A stretch of 63,470 nt of DNA, counting the filler, from Intoshia linei (Eukaryota; Animalia; Orthonectida): NCBI GenBank assembly GCA_001642005.1. It is 8 parts of 8 records of this genome, joined end to end, with 100 filler letters (N's around TTAATTAATTAA, not from the genome) between each part and the next. Parts side by side here need not be neighbours in the genome. Positions count along the whole stretch, not along the records: positions 50,748 to 57,439 come from LWCA01001670.1; 7 more parts are not named here. One strand, given 5' to 3'. This document shows positions 453 to 57,420 of this stretch, piece by piece. Made by a program: the position numbers and the translations under genes. How positions within the stretch are numbered: the stretch's first letter is position 1; every line of letters starts with the position of its first letter. The notes below the pieces were generated by a model. The model did not search any database. It was not told the DNA's origin and saw nothing but the letters and a program-made list of their open reading frames with translations.

Positions 453-3400
453 AAAAAAGAAGATAATGTAAATAATAATATATTATACGATCATGAAATG
501 CAAACTTTCAACAATGTGGACAAATATAAGGGAGTTCAAACTCAGGATGTTAAAAAAGAGGTAAGTGTTTATATTTATATATATTTATAATTACATCATT
601 TTATTAATTGCATAATTATGAGTAAAAGTAAATCTTTTTAAATTTTTGCATGCACTTATATGTATGTATGTCTGGTGAATTTATTACAAACTTTTTTATC
701 AATATGAATCGGTTTCCTATGATTATGTTCGTGGAGATCCTAGAGCAGTGGTTCCCTATTCAAATAGTGTACGTACTACGGACCCCCATTTCAAAATATT
801 TATTTTTTAGGACGGCAAAGAAAACATGAAATGTAAAACATTTATAAAAAAATTGATGGTTTTTTCTCATATGATTTGGTAAGTCGGATTTATCAAAAAA
901 ATATTGGAAAAAAGGGGTTTTTCCATTAAGGATTGGTAAAATTGCATTTTGAATTAGGAACTGTTGCTCATAAGATTTAAAATAATCAGATTTTTCCCTG
1001 AGGGTTTAAAATTATATTTTTTATTAAATTTTATTAATGATGGATAAAAGTGGCATTTTTGAAAGAATAAAGGACCGGTTGTCTAGTATTTGAGATAAAT
1101 TCACAACATCTGGCAAATCTGTAATAAATATTAAAAATTCTCCTATAAAAATAAACAAAAGTTGATAAAATTTGTTGTATATTTTTTTAAATCTCATGGA
1201 TCCCAGAAATATTGTTTTTTACCGCATGGGGTTCAGGGACCCCAATCGGGAACCACTGCCATAGAGTGAAGATAATAAGGCCAGATAAAAATTACTGTGC
1301 AATAAAACTCCTATATAAACATGACAAAAATTTTTTGGTTCCTCTACATTGTTGTACTGTATTAATTCTCAATTTTTTTTCTGTGTTACCTTACTGCAGT
1401 AAAAAAATTACGCCGACTTGATAAATTTCGGGTAAAATAAAAAATACGTTTCATGTCATTTTATCCATTTATTGAAAATTTGAAACAAATTTAACAATTT
1501 TAATCCAATTATGAAATTAATGTATTAAAACAGCACAAACAAAATTACGCAACCCTATGCGATCTTCAAGAAAGTGATCATTTGCTTTCTGCTGACAATA
1601 CTTTAATGGAAATAATGTCTTCAAGCAAAGATACTAAAATAAAATCTGCATCAAGTAAAAGTGCTATATCTACTGCGTCTACGGAAATTGAAAATGTAGA
1701 AAATAATTATATTAATATATTGGAAATCTCAGAAAAAATTATAGCTATAAATAATTATAAAGTCAATTTGGCTAAATATCAAGGTAATAATAGATACGTA
1801 TTAAATTTTCATATTTAAAAAAAAAATAAATAAATTTTTTTTTGTTCAAACAAATATTGCCCATGATAGACTAGAACAGAGGTGGCGAAGCATTTACTGT
1901 TGGAAGGCCACATTAACGTCCCAAAAATTGAATAAGTCCGCACCTTTCTAAATAAAATTTTATCAAATACAGCAGTGCTTTTCGTGGCGGTGACTGGTCA
2001 CCCCAAGGGGTATATAATAATATAATAATAATACGAAAATTTTAAATAATTGGGGTGAATGATAAATTTTTAATATATTTTGTTCAATTTAGTAAAATCT
2101 CATGAGAAAAAACCAAAATTTTACCAACCTTTAAGGTAAAAATTCATCCATCAAATCCCAAAAGAAAAAACATAATTTTACCAACCCTCAACCAATATTT
2201 TTCTGAAAAATTCCACTTTACCAAAAATTAATATTTTAAAAATAATTCAGATTGTTCAGAAGGCTCCACTGTCCCCACCTCTGGACTAGAATAAAACTTT
2301 TAAATTTTGATAATTTTTTAGACATCAAACCTCCATCTACTGCCGGAATTAGTGGTATTTTTGATATTGACTATTCTGATCAAGATGAAATGTTTCATTT
2401 GGAAGAATTATGGCGACTTGAATCTGATGAAACCAATAAAAATGTAACAAGTATTAATCTCAATCCTAAAAATGAAGTAAGGTTAATAAAAAATGTTTAA
2501 AAAATAGTTTATACTTGCTATAACTCATGGGAATTACGACAAATTCAGAACAGAAGATTATGGTTTAGTTTCCTGTTGGTCTCTTAAAAATATAGAGGTT
2601 TAAAAATTAATTTTTCGGAAAAATTGATAAAACGAATCATTATTATAATTATTAATCTATCACAAACAGCTGGCTTTTAATTCTAAAAAATTAAATTTAA
2701 TATTTAGCATCCAAAGAGAATGCATCAATTCTCAACAGGTGTCATATCTTGCGATTTTTCGAAAAAGAATCCAAATATATTAGCGGTAGATTTTATTATC
2801 GGTAAGTTTATAATTTTTTAATTTAAGATTGGATTACATGACGGAAGAATCATACTATTTGATGTAACCCTCGATGAAAATCCAGTTGTTTTGGACAATA
2901 TGTAATGATTATAATTACATTTGATATAAAATAATTTTTTTTAAACTAGGAACAATCCTGATAAAAATATTGGCATAATTTGGAAATTATGTTGGGTTAT
3001 CATTGAAGAGAAAAATGATGTAATTAAATTGGAAAATTTATATAGTGCATCTCAAGATGGAAGAATAACTTATTGGGATAAAGAAAAACGATTTGAAGCG
3101 AACGGTAAATATTTTTATACTCATAATATACATGTATTTATATTTATTATATAGACATCATGTTAATGAAAAGAGCGCCAATCCGAAAAACAAACCAAAA
3201 ATTAACAAACTCTGAAATTGGTAAATCTGAACTAGAAAATCAATTTTTAACAGGGTATACCGGTGCAATTTCAATGGATTTCAACAAAGATAATAACAAA
3301 CTGTTTTAAATAAAATATTGTATACAATATTATTTAGTTACCTTGTCGGAACAGAAGATGGATCTGTACAACTCTGTTCTATATCTCATAATGAACAATA

Positions 3401-4548
3401 CTTGCAGACATATTATTACCATACCGTATTATTGTAGTTATATATACAATGTACTTACATTTAACGTTAGGCACCAATTAATAAAATCGTGTGGTCGCCA
3501 TTTAATTCAGACATTTTTATTACAGCCTCAAGTGATTGGACGATTTGTATTTGGTCAAAACACAACGACGAACCCATTGTTTGCTTACATGGAACGGTAT
3601 TGCATTTTTGTAAATATAATTAAATCAATGCAGAAACCAGTATTGGATGTTATATGGTCACCAAGTACTTCTACCTTGATTGCATCAATAACCAGTGAAA
3701 CACTTAACATTTGGGATATGACTGAAAATTTGTAAAATAATTTGTTTCGAATTATTTACTTTTGTTTAGATTAGACCCCATTACTACAAATAACGCTCCA
3801 CCAAATTCCAAATACACTTGCATCAAATTCAATCATGATGGAAAGGTAATGTGATGTACCAAGGCAGAGGTGGGGAAAAATTTACTGTTCGAAGGCCGCA
3901 ATAACCTCCCCAAAAAATTTAATAACCTTTCTAAATAAAATTTAATCAAATACAGTAGTGTTTTTCATGGGGTAACTGGTCACCCCAAGGGGTGAATAAT
4001 TTTATTAGGAGTGAATACGAAAATTTTAAATAATTGAGGTGAATGATAAATGTTTAGCATATTTTATTCAATTTAGTAAAATCTTATGAGATAAAACCAA
4101 AATTTTACCAACTTTTAATGAAAAAATCCCATTTTACCAAAAATATTATAATAAATAAAATAATTTTAAATGAAAAACGATTCAAATTTTCCATAACGCC
4201 GCATCAAATAAGACAGGGTTGTCAATAAGACCGTACTTTGCCCACCTCTGTACAGCGGCCTTTCACATTCAAATTGGCAACTAAATTTAACGAGGGTGCC
4301 ATTATTGATGATATTTGTTTGAATTGAGACAATTTAAGAATTCCCATCTCATCAAATTAATATTTTTAATACAACTCCATTTTTAGAGCATATATGTTGG
4401 AACAAGCGTAGGAGTTGTATATCTGTATTCCCTCGTTGGATTATCTGACAAAAGCCTAAATAATAATGTAAGATTATAAAATTGAATTATAAATAATATC
4501 TAGAGTAAACAACTTAAAGCAATACTGGAATCGAAAAAAATCAATTAA
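453..4548 (+). CDS. WDR78: WD-repeat axonemal dynein intermediate chain WDR78/DNAI4, multi-exon, 5' end outside window
   Basis: Spliced exons read EMQTFNNVDK, LEELWRLESDETNKNVTSINLNPKN, GLVSCWSLKN, GVISCDFSKKNPNILAIGLHDGRI, YLVGTEDGSVQLCSISHNEQYLQTYYYH, PINKIVWSPFNSDIFITASSDWTICIW, LNIWDM. These match WDR78 motifs; GT-AG introns; stop TAA at 4546-4548. Confidence 0.85.
746..1258. mobile_element. hAT-type MITE in WDR78 intron
   Basis: TIRs cagtggttccc...gggaaccactg; imperfect 8-bp TSD tcctagag/ccatagag. Confidence 0.7.
1877..2283. mobile_element. hAT-type MITE (cagaggtgg family), copy 1
   Basis: TIRs cagaggtgg...ccacctctg, perfect 8-bp TSD gactagaa on both sides. Confidence 0.85.
3865..4250. 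mobile_element. hAT-type MITE (cagaggtgg family), copy 2
   Basis: Same TIRs and internal sequence as 1877-2283. Related pieces at about 11090-11400 and 17877-18082. Confidence 0.8.
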
Positions 4549-4594
4549 AGAATTAAATTTATAATAAACATTTATTTAAAAATAACATTGTTAT

Positions 4595-7261
4595 TCACAT
4601 ACTTTCATTTTGATTTAACAAAATGTAAGTAAACGCTAAAGTTGTGGTATTTACTACAACAGAAGCTATACTAGAAAATGCCGCTTGGCCTTGTGATATC
4701 TAAAAAAATATGTATACTATCATAAAAAAATTACAAGTGGAGTTATTAATGATCGATTGGTCGACATCATGATGATAACTGCGATATTTATTGTTAAAAT
4801 ACCAGTAGTAATAAACAAAGCAAATCGTCTGTTTCGAATGGAACTGTATTCTGAACTTGTGTCACTAGTTCGATCAATGACAAGTAAAGGTAATGGAGCA
4901 CAAATATAAAAAATTATATTTAAGAGAGGCCACCAATTACTACAATATAATAAATATATATACAGTAATATCAATTACTATGAATCATGCACACAACATC
5001 CTAAAAATAAAATAAAATATGGTATAAAATTTAAAGTAAAAAATATTCATTTGTTAGAAAGAACCCGGAAAAAACTATAAAAAATATACTAATAACGTCA
5101 TATTTTTTTAAACAAGACGGCAATATTACATTTGAAAACACAATTTTGATAGAATTTTAATTATACATCACATCAATAATTCATTTATATGTTAAAAATA
5201 TTTATTAGCATTGAGAATCAATATTTATTAAAAATAAGGATTTATTGATGGGGAAAAACTATAAGACACTAACTTCAATATAGTTAAATAATATCGTATC
5301 ATTTACTAAAATGATAATTAAATTACGAGTAAAGACTCCAAATTTACGAATAACCTCAACAACCCTAAATCAAAATCAAATTTGTACTATAAGTGTTGTT
5401 AAACATTTTTAAAATGAAAAATTGCGTAGCAAAGAAAAGAAAGCGAATGAATGAATTTATGATATTTCCACCAATATCTCTTTATTGGAAATGTGTAGAC
5501 ATTTTTATGAAAATGTGTGTGGGAAGGTAGTTGAGGGTATTGATATTCTTAAGAAAATAGTGGTAATATAAAATAATTGAAATTTTAATGTACCAAAGAT
5601 ATTTTTGATGACGGATAAACAAATGTTGAAATAAGGTCTGTTTAAAATTTAAAAAACAGTTTCTATCTATTTTCTTAAAAAAATAATTTCGAAACCAAAA
5701 AAAAAATACTAAAGTGCTTTTTTGATCCTAAAGGTGTCATTCTGTAATATTTTGAAATTTTTTGTGTATGTTAACTGGATATAACTGTATCAACTATTAT
5801 TTTTAAAAAGATTTTAATACTATTTTCATTTTTTAAAAAAAGGATAATCTGTGGTTTTGATCGTGAAAATGCCCTTTTTTAAAGTTGTTATTAAGTTAAG
5901 TTAGAGGTTAAGTTAAAGTATTCCAGAATGTATGTTTTATAATATCTTAGGACGTATTTCATTTTTAAAATAAAGGGTAATTTGGGATTTTGACCATGAA
6001 GTTGTGCGTTTCTGAGATTGAGATTTACGCAATATTAATAAAAAAAGGGTAAATTGAGTTTAAGATCTTGAAAGACTTAATTTCGAGAAATGAAACACAT
6101 ATCAAACATCATAACATGATATCAAAATAATTTTTCTATCAATTAAAATTGAAAATATAATTGAACAAACATTAACCAAAAAAACCACTATGTTTTTAAA
6201 ATGTCTTAGTTCCAGCATTGTAAAACTCTCAGAAAAACCTGTAATGAAAAACGGCGAATATTCAATTCAGCAATACATCTTAGAAAGACATAAAATCGGT
6301 TTTGTTAATGAATCATAATATTTATTTTTTGACAATCTTTTTGTGGTTTGTTATTTATTAATAACAATAAGCCACATTTTGAAGGGTTTTAATGGAATAT
6401 TTTTAACATTTCATGGGATCTTCAGAATCTTTAAAAATTTGATAAAAAAAATGTTCTCTTAAAACCCCTACAAAACATTGGTCCAAAATTATCTTCAAAA
6501 TCTTTAAAAATTGGGTAAAAAGAAATTTGAATTTGGTAAACAAAACAATCATTGTTTAAAAAAATAAACGAAATTGGAGATGGAGCACTGAAAATCAGTT
6601 ATAAAATGTCCAAACTTAACAAAAATTTACATGGAAAAATTGGTACTTATGCATATACAAAAATAGGTATATTTTATGCTTTTTTGACGAAAAATAGTTC
6701 AACATAGAAGGGTCTGATAGTTATTGTATTTGTTTCCAAGATGTGAGAAAACGGTAATTATTTAAATTGAAACGACATTGTGGAGAGAAACGTATCAAGC
6801 CTTGGAAAGTTTTAGAAACAAATTCCAAACAAAATACTTTAAAAATTAAATTAAATTTTGAAAAATATTAACGTCCATTTGACTACACCATTCTCGCTGG
6901 ATTGAAATAGAAACTATATGGGGATAATTAAAGGAATTGTTAATTAAACCTTCGTTCGGTTTAGATGCACTTTGGAACGATATAACCAACCCACAATTGA
7001 TGTCTTAATTAATAGTATGTCTTCCAGAATTTGCGGGTCATCATTTTGCCACCCTTGGCCTAATGTATATAATACATCAATAAATACTCGTAGTTTAAAT
7101 TAAAAAATACCTAAAACGAGAAATAAAATTCCAATTGTAAGAGAAATGGAAGAAAGCAACAGTCTATACAAATATTTAAAAAATAAATTTATAAATCTGG
7201 TACCCTAAATATAAAATCTGAATAATTTAAATAAAAGTAGGCCATTACCTTTAGTCTTCAT
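4595..7261 (-). CDS. LEPROT: Leptin receptor overlapping transcript / Vps55 family membrane protein
   Basis: Spliced protein MKTK-G-LLLSSISLTIGILFLVLGCCVHDSYNWWPLLNIIFYICAPLPLLV...FALFITTGI...; WP and FxTTG motifs and four TM segments typical of Vps55/LEPROT; stop TGA at 4595-4597. 2.1-kb intron at about 5001-7110. Confidence 0.85.
5513..5655 (+). pseudogene. Duplicated fragment of the PPIE penultimate exon plus intron start, inside the LEPROT intron
   Basis: gggaaggtagttgagggtattgatattcttaagaaaatag...tgatgacggata.acaaatgtt aligns with 9513-9645 ([13 protein letters not shown]). Confidence 0.8.
6455..7030 (+). mobile_element. Degenerate Tc1/Tc3-like transposase remnant, copy 1
   Basis: Decayed reading resembling FDEKxFNIEGxDG..CFQDVRK..KRxCGE (Tc3-type DEKKFNLDGPDG..WHDLRK); near-identical copy at 11705-12230. 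Confidence 0.55.
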
Positions 7262-50747: not shown

Positions 50748-51168
50748 GGAAGTCTGATTTAATTTTTTGTGATTATTAATTATTTCGTGGTTCAACCTGA
50801 GATTTTTGCTATGAAGGTGAATACCTCCTTGGAAGTCTTATTTAACTTTTAGTGATGATTAACCATTTCGCGGTTTGACCTGAGCTTTTTGATATGAAGG
50901 TGAATACCTCCTTGGAAGTCTGATTTAATTTTTTGTGATGATTAACCATTTCGCGGTTCGACCTGAGCTTTTTGCTATGAAGGTGAATACCTCCTTGGAA
51001 GTCTGATTTAATTTTTTGTGATTATTAATTATTTCGCGGTTCAACCTGAGCTTTTTGCTATGAAGGTGAATACCTCCTTGGAAGTCTGATTTAACTTTTT
51101 GTGATGATTAACCATTTCGCGGTTCAACCTGAGTTTTTAGCTATGAATGTGAATACTTGAAAGTCTGA
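50748..51168 (+). ncRNA. SNORD14: Tandem array of U14 (SNORD14) box C/D snoRNA genes, 83-bp period, in the intron before the last HSC70 exon
   Basis: Each unit has box C gtgatga, catttcgcggtt (U14 domain A-like), an internal ctga, acctccttggaagt (domain B-like) and box D ctga. Copies at 50769-50840, 50852-50923, 50935-51006, 51018-51089, 51101-51168, plus a 3' remnant at 50748-50757. HSC70 is the known U14 host gene in vertebrates. Confidence 0.85.
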
Positions 51169-51286
51169 TTTAATTGTGTTATTGATTAACTGTCCAATGA
51201 AATTCAGTGTTTTACTAACTTTTTATTAATGACAATTTATTTATGATTATATTCAAAAAATAATTATTATTTATAATAAATTTTAG

Positions 51287-51535
51287 AATGAAACTAAAGA
51301 AGTTTACGACAGTCACAAAAAAGCATTAGAAGATATTTATAATCCAATTGTTAGCAAATTATATGGTGGAGCTGGTGGTGGAATGCCCGGCGGTATGCCA
51401 GGAGGAATGCCCGGTGGTATGCCTGGAGGTTTTAATATGCCCGGTGGAATGGGAGGCGCTGCTGCCAATGGTGCTGGTATGTCTGATGCAGCTGGAGCTG
51501 GAGCTTCTGGACCAACGATTGAAGAAGTCGATTAA
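51287..51535 (+). CDS. HSPA8: Terminal exon of cytosolic HSP70/HSC70
   Basis: ttttag|[48 protein letters not shown]...SGPTIEEVD*; branch point tactaac at 51213-51219. Confidence 0.93.
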
Positions 51536-51597
51536 ATGTGTACAAGATTAAATTATTACATTTATATTTATTAAAATATTGTTTCGTCATTTCATTT

Positions 51598-52855
51598 CTA
51601 AAAATATGGTGCATTTTGATGGTTTATATACTGATGATATTGGGAGAAATAATGGTTGTACAATGGTGGTTCAATGAAATTATTCATGGGAAGATGCATC
51701 ATTAATGGAACATTGCATTTTTGCGGTGTCACACTTCTTGGTATGTTTGCTAATCTCACTATTATTTTGTAACCTAAAGATGCAAATCGGTTGTTTTCAC
51801 TTGTCATTGCATTGGCCGCAGTCACTTTGTCTTTAAAACAGACAAAACCGTATCCCTGCGGGTGACCGTTTTTGAATATGACTTTTGCTTCAGCTATTTC
51901 GCCGTACTTTTCAAAAATCTAAATTTTATTTTATTTATTGTGTGTATTGTTTTTAACATGTTACCTTCTTTAGTTGATACAATGTCATTGCACCAATATT
52001 TTGAACGATTAAATTGTTTCTTTCTTTTCTTTTTGCTTTCATTTGTAAGTATCTGGTTTCAATTTGTTGCTTTCTTTCACTTTTTTTGATAGCTTCTCTA
52101 ACATACAGTTTTTTGCATTTATTGTTAATAATCATTACGTGTTCACTTCGAAGTGCTTTGAGGCCATCTTCCATATGTGTGAATGTTACAAAACCAAATT
52201 TTTTAGAAATTCCATTTCTATCTTTCATTACTATTGTATTATCAATAGCACCGAATTGACTAAAATAATTATTCAGATCGACTTCTGTCCAGTTTCCCAG
52301 ATATTTTACATATAAATTGTATTTGCGTGTTTTTTTTTTTGGAACGTATTTTTCAATTTTAACATGTCTAAAGACGTGCGTTTCACGAATAATCTTTACA
52401 GATGCTATTGATTTTGAAGCTGCAGACACGTCATAAAATTGGATGAATGCGTAGGCGCCCTTGTCTGTTCTTTGAAGTTTTGTCGAATATATTTTTCCAA
52501 ACTGTTGGAATGTTGCATACAGTATTCTTGTATCTGCACTAGCATCTATGTAACGGAGAAATAAGTTTCCTTCTCCAGATTCTCGGCGTTTTTTGTCAAT
52601 ATCCATTAAAGAGATTTGTAAATTACGTGATAAAAATGGGGTGTTACTAAATTTAAATATAGCTTCTAATGCATCAGATTCATTGTCAAAATATGCTCGT
52701 GCAAATGCGTATTTTCCTGTATTGTGGTAATTGTTTCCTACTATTGTTAATTTTTTAATGTTTACTTTTTTAGCAAAGTGCTTTTGCATTTCCATTTCAT
52801 TTGCATTTTTGTCTATATTAGTCACGTGTAAAACAGTTTCTTTTCCGGTGAACAT
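51598..52855 (-). CDS. Divergent cytoplasmic poly(A)-binding protein-like, 4 RRMs, no MLLE domain
   Basis: RRESGEGNLF, LYATFQQFGKIYS, YNLYVKYL, VMKDRNGISKKFGFVTF, LYVREAIKKSERKQ; one intron (about 51919-51964), then IFEKYGEIAEAKVI..GYGFVCF (RRM4) and a short Pro/Tyr/His tail. Confidence 0.8.
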
Positions 52856-54271
52856 TATTTTTTATTTCTTTTTTAAAATTTCGTTTATTTTCTTTAAAAA
52901 TAATTATTATGATTGACACATTTATTTATTTGTATTCAAAAGAAAACTAGGTTTAATAAACCAGTTTTTTGGAAAATCTGGATGTATTGTTTTAACATGC
53001 AAGCTCAATCTGTTTTTTTAACATCTAAGATTTGTTTATATATTGCACAAATTGATTGAATACTACAATATTTGGGTGAAACTACAACTGTAGTTATTTC
53101 TGAAATAAATTCTCCGGCTATTTTTATAAGTGGTTTAAATCCAAAAAACTTGAGTCAAAAACGCATTTTTTTAATTATAATTAATAATTTCATATTTTAA
53201 TTGCTCTAAAGCCATTTTTTATCATTTTAAAGTCCGATTTTAACAAAAGAAAAGTGTTAATGTTAATGTTTTTATAAATGTAAGATGTCATCTAACATAA
53301 GAAAAAATTTCCTTTAGTAAATAAGTCATTAACGAGATATAACGTGTGGCTAAATAGTTGACTGCTGAGAAAAATGGGTTAAATTAAAATTGTTTAGACT
53401 CAACTTTAAAATAAATACACAGACAGCAAAGTAATTTTTTCAAAAAAATAATTTAGAACCAGTAAATTTAACAAATATAAAAAATTAAATAAAATTGTAA
53501 GTTTGGTATTAAGTAAAAATATAGATTAATGTAATTAAAAATAAAATAAATTAATCCATTTAATGATTATAATCGAATTATAAACAGCTGATCATCAGCT
53601 GTAAAAATTATAAAATAAATTCTTAAATCTTAAACATAAATACGATTGATAATGAAATCAAAATTTAGATATCAAATTAAAATGGTACACAGAAATATTG
53701 ACCCATAGTTAACAGTACACTAAAGTGTCACATTTTTTCGATAATTTTAGAATTTGATATACAATTAGCACTAAAAGTGTGTATTTTTAAAATAGAAAAA
53801 CTAATTCGCAATCAAAAATATTTAACGCTATCTATTCAAGTTGCGTTTGTCATTTTAAATATCACTATAAATATTGTGAAAAAATAAAAACTGAACTTTA
53901 TTTTAACGAAAATCGGCATTTGAGCTTTTAAACGTGGTACCGCCATTATAATACTGTTTTCAATGTTTAGTTATACAGTTTATTTTTTTAAATTTGTTTC
54001 TAGCTTAATTTTTTTGTATTTTATTAACGATTTAATTTTTTGAATTCTGGTTATTTACAATATAATAAATTCATTCAAATACACGACATTCAAGATCTTG
54101 TTAATCATGTTTGCAAAAATATAGTCATGTTTTCAATGAATATGGTCAATACAGAGATTCCATAATATACCAAAATTTATTAGATATTTTTTAGAAGCAC
54201 AAATTAAATTAATTTTTCACAATATATTCGGGAAATTAAAATTAAATTTATATTTATAATTATATATATAT

Positions 54272-54493
54272 TTATATCAAGTTAATATTATTTGCATGAA
54301 TTGTAGTTTCAAGATTATGATTGGATGTGATTCTACCTTTACAACCAGAACTTACACATTTCCAGTATAATGTGGTCATGTTCCTTTGATGTATTGTATA
54401 CATATATCCAAAGTGGTACAGCTTAGCCTTTCCTCTTAATGTCGAAAATAATTTTATACTGTTCGATTCCATGTTGATGTTAGTCTCTTCCAT
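54272..54493 (-). mobile_element. FLYWCH zinc finger, probable MULE transposase remnant
   Basis: RGKAKLYHFGYMY......YWKC...GCKGRI..H pattern. Confidence 0.65.
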
Positions 54494-54799
54494 TAAGTCT
54501 TTTGTTTATAATTTGAGTGACTATTATTAAGAGATTAAAATTATTTTTCAATTAAAAATAATCCTGTTGAAAAGATTTATTATTATAAAGTATTATAATC
54601 AAAATATTTTCCCTTTTTTTTCTAGGACAGAATTCACTACCAATATAATTTAATTGAAATATAATCTTGGATTAATTAATATCTAATCATTATTTATTAT
54701 TAATCTCGCCTTATAAATACTGCAGCACATATATTAAATATTTACGCTATTGAATATTTGATTTACGTTCATTATTTTTATATCAATTTCAATTCAGTT

Positions 54800-57420
54800 T
54801 TATTGCAATCTTTTAAAATACCAAAAATGACCACAAGAATTGGAGATATTTTNATATATAATCATTATTTATTATTAATCTCGCCTTATAAATACTGCAG
54901 CACATATATTAAATATTTGACTTACGTTTATTATTTTTATATCCTTTTCAATTCAATTTTATTGCAATCTTTTAAAATACCAAAAATGACCACAAGAATT
55001 GGAGATATTTTGGTTGGTCCATATTTCGGTTTCATTTTTAATGAACAGAAACTACCTACTAATAAAAATTNATATCAATTTCAATTCAGTTTTATTGCAA
55101 TCTTTTAAAATACCAAAAATGACCACAAGAATTGGAGATATTTTTGTTGGTCTATATTTCGGTTTCATTTTTAATGAACCAAAACTACCTACTAATAAAA
55201 ATGTTCTTTGCAGAATATTGTCAAAAAATAATCAAAACATAATATTACCATTTCGTGGTATTGCAAGTTAAATTTTCGATATATATTGTAAAACTGGATT
55301 GAATATAATAGGCATTGAACGTATTTATGTTAAATTAAAATATTTATTTCAAAATTACCAAAATGCATTCAGAAATTCTAATTCTCATGTATCATGGGTG
55401 GTGATGATGGGTGTGACACCCTACAGTATACAATTACATTTCATCATAGTAATAATAATAGTAATAATTTATAATATTATAATAATAGANTTTCAATTCA
55501 ATTTTATTGCAATCTTTTAAAATACCAAAAATGACCACAAGAATTGGAGATATTTTGGTTGGTCCATATATCGGTTTCATTTTTAATGAACAGAACCTAC
55601 TAATAAAAATGTTATTTGCAGAATATTGTCAAAAAAGAATCAAAACATAATATTGTCATTTTGTGGTATTGCAAGAGAAATTTTCGATATATATTGTAAA
55701 ACTGGATTGAATATAATAGGCATTGAACGTATTTATGTTAAATTAAAATATTTATTTCAAAATTACAAAAATGCATTCAGAAATTCTAATTCTCATGTAT
55801 CAAACAATTTTAAGCATGACTTAAATGCTTTATTTGAGGTTGCCAAATTCGACCAAAGCAAGACACTTAGTGAAGATATAGATTTTCTCGAGAAGCAAAA
55901 AATCGGAACAGGATATATGGCCTGTCAATATGGATATTATGGTAGTCCATCATTTAATTGATGTCAACTGAAGAAAATATATTTGAAGAGAAAGATGATT
56001 CTAAAATTAATATGTTACGCGTATGTGACTCTAAATTAATTTCAACACGAGGGGCAGCTATATTAATGGTAAATTATTAACACTAATGTAAATCAGGGTT
56101 CGGCAACCTTTTTCATCTCGTGAACTACTTTTATCAAACTTTACACATGATAAATTTTATTAAAATTTTATTATAATACAAACAAATAGATTTTTGGCGT
56201 AGGTAATATCAAATCATGATTAATTTTGATAAATTTATTATTTACGTAAATTAATGTAACAATGCATTCTAATTAAAATTTTAATCTTATTTTTTATGAT
56301 GGTTATATATTAATTGATAAAAATTTAAAAATAAATCATTGACTCAAAGAGCCACCAAAATTAATATGTGGACCACTGGTTGTCGATTCCAAATATAAAT
56401 AATGTATATATTAAATTTATGTTAATTAAATTACATGTATTATTAAAGTATATATTAATATAGGGTACATCTCATGAAACCAATAGAAAGAACAGAATGT
56501 TGGTTAAAATGAAAGACATAAAAACTATTCGGAGTTAAGTTAACAAAATTGTCAAATTTGTTATATATTTTGATAGCAAAAAATTTGGAACCGACGAAAA
56601 AATTGCAGTGGTGGTAATTGACACCAAAACAGCTAAAGAAATTGTTTTAGGTGTACCGAAACAATTAGGTGCAAAACGATGTACCACAGCTGCATCAGTG
56701 TGCAGAATTTTACAAGAATGGAATGTAAGTCATAAAGTTGTAGGTTTATGTTTTGACACAACTGCATCTAATACAGGATTTAAAAGTGAAAGCGTAAAGT
56801 TAATCAAAGATATACTAAATCATCTAATCGTGGAATTGCCTTATCGTCCTCATATCCTTGAGATAATTCTTTTGTCGGTTTACAAAAAATCCTTCGGGGA
56901 TACATGTCAACCAGATATAAATGATAATTTCGTAACAAAAGTTAAAGATATTCATTTTAATAATATAAACCGATATAATAAATGCTATAATCCACCAAAA
57001 TTAACAATGAATAACATTAATTTATCCAATATTATATTAACCCTATAACAAATACAAGAATACAAACGCGACGATTACAAAGAATTCAGTAAATTATTTA
57101 TATCAATTTTAAGTGGTAACAAAGTTACTCTATTGAAACCAGGTGCAATCTTAAAGGCTCGTTGGATGTGTAGGATTATATATGCCCTTAAGGCGTATAT
57201 TCTTAATATAGACAGAAGTCAATTAATAAATTCATGTCTATTATTTACAGCATATGGTTACATAACATTCTAGATGAATGCGGGCAGTGCTACGAATGCA
57301 TACCATAATGATGTTTAAATGGAACAATTTTGGCATGAATTAAGTATTGCATCTATGTCCTTAAAAGTATTATGTGATGTTGCTGTTGAGAAACATGATC
57401 TTCACAATTATTATATAGGG
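54800..57420 (+). mobile_element. Decayed hATm-like DDE transposase, partly duplicated at single-n joins
   Basis: KLPTNKNVL, VGLCFDTTASNTG, LPYRPHILEII, RDDYKEF, KPGAI.KARWM..IIYALK; tagggtgtcaca-type ends at 55410-55422 (-) and 11036 (+). Confidence 0.65.

Follow-up and report, generated by a model that had tools for sequence, protein, structure and literature searches.

A candidate tandem cluster of U14-type box C/D snoRNA units in the last HSC70 intron of Intoshia linei

The last intron of the HSC70 gene of the orthonectid Intoshia linei probably harbors a tandem cluster of U14-type box C/D snoRNA units that originated by local unequal duplication. The cluster lies in a stretch of 63,470 nucleotides, filler included (8 parts of 8 records of assembly GCA_001642005.1 joined end to end; hereafter the window, whose positions are used throughout), in the part that comes from LWCA01001670.1 (27% G+C). 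There, Tandem Repeats Finder (TRF) reported one array, a head-to-tail repeat of period 83 at positions 50748-51175, with 5.2 copies, 90% matches, and a score of 688. Because the array is truncated by the left edge of LWCA01001670.1 at 50748, the five full units plus one partial unit are a lower bound; this result, together with the register alignment, bears out the initial annotation, which had described at least five full units and a partial one arranged head to tail. The core of the unit, which opens with the G of GUGAUGA and closes with the A of CUGA, spans 72 nt, and the U-rich spacer between CUGA and the next GUGAUGA measured 11 nt, the length that had been estimated. The TACTAAC motif, which had been placed about 45 nt past the last unit, was found 44 nt after the last CUGA. 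The order of elements in each unit is box C, a domain-A-like U14 stretch, a D'-like CUGA, a domain-B-like guide, and box D (Table 1).

Table 1. Features of the array and of the adjoining HSC70 exon (positions in the window)
Feature	Positions	Strand	Basis
3' remnant of the edge-cut unit (GGAAGT, CTGA, and spacer), 15 nt	50748..50762	+	TRF, register alignment
U1: box C TGATTA, domain A with CGTGG, box D CTTA	50763..50845	+	register alignment
U2: canonical GTGATGA (50852-50858) to CTGA (50920-50923), 72-nt core	50846..50928	+	SNORD14 23.1 bits
U3: canonical, core 50935-51006	50929..51011	+	SNORD14 24.0 bits, Afu_294 26.6 bits
U4: box C TGATTA, rest complete	51012..51094	+	register alignment
U5: boxes intact, C'-like ATGAAT, guide with 4-nt deletion beside box D (AATACTTGAAAGT)	51095..51173	+	
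Possible decayed start of a further unit (TTGTGTTATTGATTAAC)	51174..51200	+	similarity weak
TACTAAC, candidate branch site, 68 nt upstream of the 3' splice site	51213..51219	+	sequence
3' splice site AG	51285..51286	+	contigs of X3, X4, and X7 fit from 51287 and diverge upstream into exon sequence
Last coding exon, cytosolic HSP70/HSC70 (NETKEVYD...GPTIEEVD, stop)	51287..51535	+	1ud0 (E 5e-12), spliced contigs

Two recurrent unit types were distinguished, GAUGAUUAACCA in U2, U3, and U5 versus GAUUAUUAAUUA in U1 and U4. The original claim that every unit runs from box C to box D held for U2 and U3, which are fully canonical, and for the boxes of U5, and it failed for U1 (TGATTA and CTTA), for U4 (TGATTA), and for the guide of U5, from which 4 nt are deleted. 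The pair formed by box C (RUGAUGA) and box D (CUGA) is thus present in U2, U3, and U5 and absent from U1 and U4, and lesions in an essential element (box C, box D, or guide) affect three of the five full units. The domain-A-like and domain-B-like stretches are both complete in U2. Units U1 to U4 share an identical 29-nt block that extends from the C'-like box to the end of domain B, and all but one of the 11 variable columns fall 5' of it. To judge from the K-turn and stem II mutagenesis reportedly carried out by Watkins et al. (2000, 2002), replacing G by U in box C should cost it the G-C pair with box D through which Nop56, Nop58, and fibrillarin are recruited, and with CUUA the sheared G.A pairs should be lost. 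On these grounds U1 and U4 would be dead or weak, with U1 probably dead, and U5 appears to have lost its guide. Intact inner copies neighbor damaged ones, and decay rises toward the 3' edge (U5, then the remnant), a pattern that fits a birth-and-death array.

The reading frame that opens at 51287 encodes GGMP repeats followed by GPTIEEVD and a stop codon, which is the C-terminus of a cytosolic HSP70, and the exon product matched the C-terminal domain of rat Hsc70 and also other cytosolic HSP70s. Contigs of four public runs were aligned to positions 50748-53000. Two runs of one 2024 study (X3 and X4) provided one high-depth contig of about 2.37 kb each, and a run of a 2019 study (X7) provided a shorter contig; all three join the window at exactly 51287 and have in common an upstream sequence from outside the window that translates in frame (...IEFCDANP). 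These spliced HSC70 mRNAs indicate that 51286/51287 is a used 3' splice site and that the array sits on the sense strand of the last HSC70 intron, a location that is well supported and that confirms, with spliced transcripts from three runs of two studies, the intronic position proposed initially. The array is therefore transcribed within the HSC70 pre-mRNA and then spliced out. X3, X4, and X7 were treated as RNA-type on the basis of these spliced contigs, the run records labeling none of the runs as RNA. Another high-depth contig of X7, belonging to the HSP70 of a different organism, matches only the GGMP repeat at 51389-51423 (5 differences in 35 nt) and represents a conserved-repeat cross-match rather than Intoshia HSC70.

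The array-bearing intron is at least 539 nt long, about 10 times the genome median; its remaining part and the exon before it are not included in the LWCA01001670.1 piece. The published median intron of the I. linei genome is 57 bp (PMC6543705), not the approximately 40 nt given by the initial annotation. No exon intervenes up to 51286, and hence five units plus a partial one share a single intron, two snoRNA units in one intron being enough for an intronic snoRNA cluster. When compared with human HSPA8, whose intron 8 boundary we take to be Q585/T586 in phase 0, the intron lies 18 residues before NPI in both genes, with residue 3 of the query aligned to the EKEEFEH stretch. If that boundary is right, the Intoshia intron occupies the position of HSPA8 intron 8, and an old linkage is favored.

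Other features were observed in the same record. The HSC70 3' UTR reaches at least 51881 according to the contigs and overlaps the last exon (51773-51918) of a gene on the minus strand, such that the convergent transcripts share about 100 nt. This gene (51773-52855, A3Q56_07554) is annotated with 403 aa and three RRM stretches; its 297-aa ORF at 51965-52855 is 100% identical to the NCBI entry 'hypothetical protein A3Q56_07554 [Intoshia linei]', its 46-nt intron (51919-51964, minus strand, GT..AG) was confirmed by run contigs, and its contig depth in X3 is about 10 times that of HSC70. Farther along, a FLYWCH zinc-finger ORF (54272-54493, minus strand, Pfam E 3e-08) is possibly a transposon-related gene remnant, and a repeated sequence at 54758-55961 includes a 133-bp unit present twice at 54937-55202 (94% match), the ORFs at 55299-55520 and 55626-55961 having a long identical peptide stretch in common (NIIGIERIYVKLKYLFQNY...). 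Three single N bases are found at 54853, 55071, and 55490.

The family of the units was addressed with Rfam. No match to any family was obtained in the piece at the gathering thresholds. In a permissive search of positions 50748-51300 with all 4227 families, 30 of the 32 matches, all of them sub-threshold, were to box C/D snoRNA families on the plus strand. SNORD14 (RF00016), the family of U14, was second best, with full-model alignments to three units (24.0, 23.1, and 22.1 bits versus a gathering score of 64; E 0.018-0.06), and its loss of score came largely from two deletions, one of the internal hairpin and the other of 9 nt between box C and domain A. As a calibration, a metagenome was scanned for a domain B and box D separated by a short spacer from a box C and the core of domain A, and a U14 pair of a distant eukaryote recovered in this way (L001) scored 59 bits. 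Since a bona fide distant U14 pair also falls below 64, the RF00016 cut-off is strict; the Intoshia units, at 24 bits, are nevertheless much farther from the model than L001.

The two U14 domains were then compared with the Rfam U14 consensus against dinucleotide shuffles of the unit interior. Of 19 aligned columns, domain A matched the consensus in 15 (14 in U3 and U4; shuffle p 0.007-0.009); domain B, which abuts box D, did so in 14 of 17 (shuffle p 0.003-0.005), and both domains were jointly attained in at most 1 of 5000 shuffles (p <= 2e-4). The stretch after domain A also tracks U14, with CAACCUGAG versus the consensus CCACCUAAG. The host gene provides an independent argument for the U14 assignment through its vertebrate precedent, because U14 resides in hsc70/HSPA8 introns of human, mouse, and rat (PMC7277114) and in chicken hsc70 introns 5, 6, and 8, intron 8 being the last one (PMC2653536). 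Taken together, these comparisons support well the derivation of the units from U14, as a call of homology and not of function. The U14 identity advanced at the outset thus stood as far as the box C/D-like organization and the two domains that beat shuffles are concerned, and the SNORD14 covariance model, which had been named as its check, was matched below the gathering score (24 versus 64 bits).

The pairing of the guides was examined with the reverse complement of the consensus U14 domains as a target that stands in for I. linei 18S rRNA. Against this canonical target, domain B forms 12 pairs with one A/A mismatch and one bulged target base, the mismatch falling at the third position from box D and two positions off the predicted methylation site, and the duplex reaches -15.0 kcal/mol compared with -23.6 for canonical U14. 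Domain A gives 9 contiguous pairs, a G.U among them, compared with 16 for canonical U14, with duplex energies of -12 to -13.5 and -26.4 kcal/mol, respectively. Pairing to a standard 18S is therefore weakened, since the guide deviates from canonical U14 at two places. Counting from box D, the fifth position of the domain B duplex falls on the first C of CCAAGG, and this is the U14 site (human Cm462, yeast Cm414; PMC3511168). The U14 of the fly and of Tetrahymena is known without a working domain B (PMC3273799). With this precedent, a weakened domain B is compatible with U14 function.

If the deviations of domain B are two substitutions, they presumably correspond to E. coli 16S positions 340 and 349, which we take to be the partners of one helix-14 pair that in eukaryotes is an A.A mismatch. 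The changes would then imply a U.G pair in 18S helix 14 and a guide-target co-evolution, to which we give modest weight, and the I. linei 18S would be predicted to read ACUUCCAAGGAGG, not ACAUCCAAGGAAGG, at the helix-14 CCAAGG site. This covariation idea is weakened by the fact that the second deviation of the guide can equally be a 1-nt deletion. The rRNA of I. linei is fast-evolving, and it may match the altered guides.

The public runs were read as assembled contigs, from which RNA ends, strand, and sizes are not visible. Short contigs of X3 cross the U2/U3, U3/U4, and U4/U5 junctions with 0-1 differences, the UGAUUA type included, and unit junctions are also spanned by contigs of X4 and of a 2016 run (X1). 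A U1-like unit, combining TGATTA with CGTGG, was present in an X3 contig that aligns to U4. In X1, which is DNA-like, the unit contigs had a depth of 25 versus 26 for flanking single-copy sequence; given this single-copy depth, the array is local and low-copy and not a satellite dispersed throughout the genome. A 1837-nt contig of X1 consists of non-array sequence followed, at its end, by the first 30 nt of a unit, and this end is probably the left border of the array. The last unit of X1 differs from that of the window by another guide sequence before CUGA, and 18 differences separate X1 from the window over 51161-53000, 15 of them listed at 51195-51328, 52376, and 52703, with a concentration in 51195-51328, toward the 3' part of the intron. 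The divergent last unit and these differences suggest that X1 represents another haplotype or strain. Array copy number and unit composition probably vary among individuals, and two 113-nt contigs (83 + 30; X1 and X4) that resemble closed repeat cycles suggest runs of identical units in other individuals.

In X3 and X4, the depth was 2-17 for the array contigs, about 0 for the unique intron sequence at 51176-51286, and 1100-4700 for the mRNA. This pattern fits, without being decisive, a stabilized array RNA lacking its 3' flank; the excess depth of the array could also stem solely from the presence of several identical units. Every array contig in X3 and X4 contains spacers, and because these are RNA-type runs, RNA molecules with adjacent units exist. 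Ordinary libraries would miss monomers of about 75 nt.

An unlikely alternative that nonetheless deserves weighing takes the array for a decaying minisatellite made up of U14 pseudogenes, which would form no functional snoRNPs and whose RNA would be degraded with the intron, while a working U14 resides elsewhere, e.g., in another HSC70 intron or in another host gene. The lesions in box C (U1 and U4), box D (U1), and the guide (U5), the departure of both guides from the canonical sequence with its cost on canonical targets (-15 versus -23.6 and -12 versus -26.4 kcal/mol), the absence of a terminal stem, the low Rfam score, and a last unit that is unlike between the window and X1, as in unconstrained sequence, would all be in agreement with it. 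Against it, U2 and U3 keep all elements, the 29-nt block is invariant in U1-U4 and the variable columns are, with one exception among 11, located 5' of it, the RNA-type runs contain array RNA and not the adjoining unique intron, and the fast-evolving rRNA may suit the changed guides. We favor a cluster in which some units at least are likely to function.

It is improbable that the units are C/D snoRNAs of a specificity other than that of U14, either relatives of Afu_294 or orphans. Afu_294 (RF01506) was the top match of the permissive search (26.6 bits, E 0.004), a likeness carried by the cores AUUUCGC and CCUUGGA, and it guides 26S Cm1851, at a CCAAGG site, and 5.8S Am43 (PMC2377427). This match is, however, far under the gathering score of the family (43), and by hand pairing the LSU site offers 7 contiguous pairs compared with 8 plus flanking pairs at the 18S U14 site. 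For the core CAUUUCGC of the 5' guide, hand pairing gives 8 pairs with GCGAAAUG, which we take to be a conserved 5.8S sequence, but this 8-bp duplex would lie 9-16 nt from the D'-like box, out of methylation register. The spacing after domain A follows that of U14, and the HSC70 host also favors U14. Finally, a chance likeness of an AT-rich minisatellite to snoRNAs is hardly credible: TGATGA and CTGA are frequent in sequence of a genome with 27% G+C, and no Rfam family reaches its gathering score, but the joint score of both U14 domains against shuffles, the correct order of the elements on the sense strand, a host gene as in vertebrates, and the near-exclusive C/D, plus-strand identity of the sub-threshold matches all speak against it.

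For the favored U14-type cluster, a working scheme can be proposed. Intronic C/D snoRNAs are produced by particle assembly, debranching, and exonuclease trimming to the particles (PMC11028025). By analogy, Snu13/15.5K, Nop56, Nop58, and fibrillarin would assemble on the excised intron at the units with intact C/D boxes, at least U2 and U3, the lariat would be debranched, and exonucleases would trim both intron ends up to the protected particles. Domain A, the 5' guide, would pair with the 5' region of 18S (GAAACUGCGAAUG) as a chaperone of rRNA folding or processing, and domain B would bind helix 14 of 18S at its CCAAGG loop and guide 2'-O-methylation of the first C there. The units with UGAUUA, CUUA, or the guide deletion would be decaying copies of an array that evolves by birth and death.

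The release of individual units is constrained by their spacing. Because the spacers are only 11 nt long, exonucleases alone would free only a unit without an assembled neighbor, and each intron may yield one monomer, several monomers (after a cut in the U-rich spacer), or a chain of joined units. Two assembled neighbors are predicted to give a joined product like a sno-lncRNA, unless an endonuclease cuts the U-rich spacer. When single units were folded, they did no better than shuffles (z -0.01 to +0.77), and neither a convincing terminal stem nor a spacer hairpin was found. An RNase III-type release signal was consequently rejected as unsupported, in line with the absence of an obvious stem of this type noted at the outset. 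Unstructured guides are usual in C/D snoRNAs; the absence of a terminal stem and of an RNase III-type signal bears on assembly and release. The initial suggestion of an undescribed processing mode in an animal was not established, intronic snoRNA clusters being already a named class (PMC11028025). A more ambitious view, held only tentatively and well short of an even chance, combines a U14-HSC70 linkage as old as the bilaterians, perhaps in the same last, phase-0 intron, with a U14 dosage met by the array and with either stemless spacer cutting or chained multi-snoRNP particles.

The closest known system is vertebrate U14 (SNORD14C/D/E in HSPA8/hsc70 introns 5, 6, and 8), with which the Intoshia units have in common the C/D boxes, domain A, a domain B beside box D, and a sense-strand location in introns of cytosolic HSC70, the last intron included (PMC7277114; PMC2653536). 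Vertebrate U14 occurs as one copy per intron and exceeds 64 bits in Rfam, whereas the Intoshia array has at least 5 copies with 11-nt spacers that reach 24 bits, and its units are shorter (72-nt core) and altered in both domains.

Several snoRNAs in one intron are known as 'intronic snoRNA clusters' (PMC11028025). As in these, the array puts multiple snoRNA units into a single spliceosomal intron, where they are transcribed along with the host gene. Such clusters were reportedly described in rice by Liang et al. (2002) and in Drosophila by Huang et al. (2005), and in most known examples the spacers are longer and the snoRNAs either differ from one another or form a small set of paralogues; the Intoshia array differs from them in being a near-identical, partly decayed satellite of period 83 with 11-nt spacers. 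In sno-lncRNAs, exonucleases halt at the snoRNPs and the RNA between two assembled units survives (PMC11028025). By this likeness, dimers or multimers are predicted from the Intoshia array if an endonuclease is absent, although sno-lncRNAs have a long functional internal sequence and the predicted Intoshia product would contain an 11-nt spacer or further units.

The polycistronic snoRNA clusters of plants, yeast, and protists also include U14 genes that follow one another head to tail across short spacers. The metagenome scan retrieved four loci, none of them Intoshia-related, and two (L002 and L003) were set aside as probable chance matches in G+C-rich stretches. The other two come from one eukaryote (L001 1385-1688, equal to L004 1840-2140) and contain two canonical U14 genes, spaced by 20 nt and preceded by another C/D snoRNA; each U14 has a Y-domain hairpin whose loop resembles the plant consensus. 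Upstream of this cluster there is a GTAAGT, and downstream a pyrimidine-rich tract that ends in AG; both suggest that the cluster may be intronic, and the adjoining ORFs are, by eye, unlike HSP70. In contrast to the Intoshia units, those of L001 and L004 keep the Y-domain hairpin and canonical guides (59 bits). The release of yeast polycistronic snoRNAs depends on RNase III stems, and the Intoshia array has no such stem.

The SNORD115/116 and SNORD113/114 repeats resemble the array in local amplification of C/D units, copy gain and loss, and homogenization (PMC11028025). All Intoshia copies lie within one intron of a protein-coding gene. The SNORD repeats, on the other hand, are orphan snoRNAs, each in its own intron of a repeated non-coding host. 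In the literature searched, no satellite-like homo-array of near-abutting snoRNA units within one intron of a protein-coding gene was found for an animal, nor any U14 in an invertebrate hsc70 or any report on Intoshia snoRNAs.

U14 is among the few snoRNAs required for 18S rRNA processing, and its presence in hsc70 introns was the founding case of intron-encoded snoRNAs. Over deep time, snoRNAs were generally concluded not to stay linked to their hosts (PMC3511168). Finding a U14-like gene in the last HSC70 intron of a spiralian would therefore point either to an unusually old linkage or to independent capture by this broadly expressed gene. One snoRNA per intron is the usual animal pattern, and near-abutting units would be an extreme break with it. 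The array thus provides a natural experiment on how animal cells deal with polycistronic intronic snoRNAs, by resolving them or by making joined products, and its intact and damaged units may display the gain and decay of snoRNA genes within a single intron of a strongly compacted genome.
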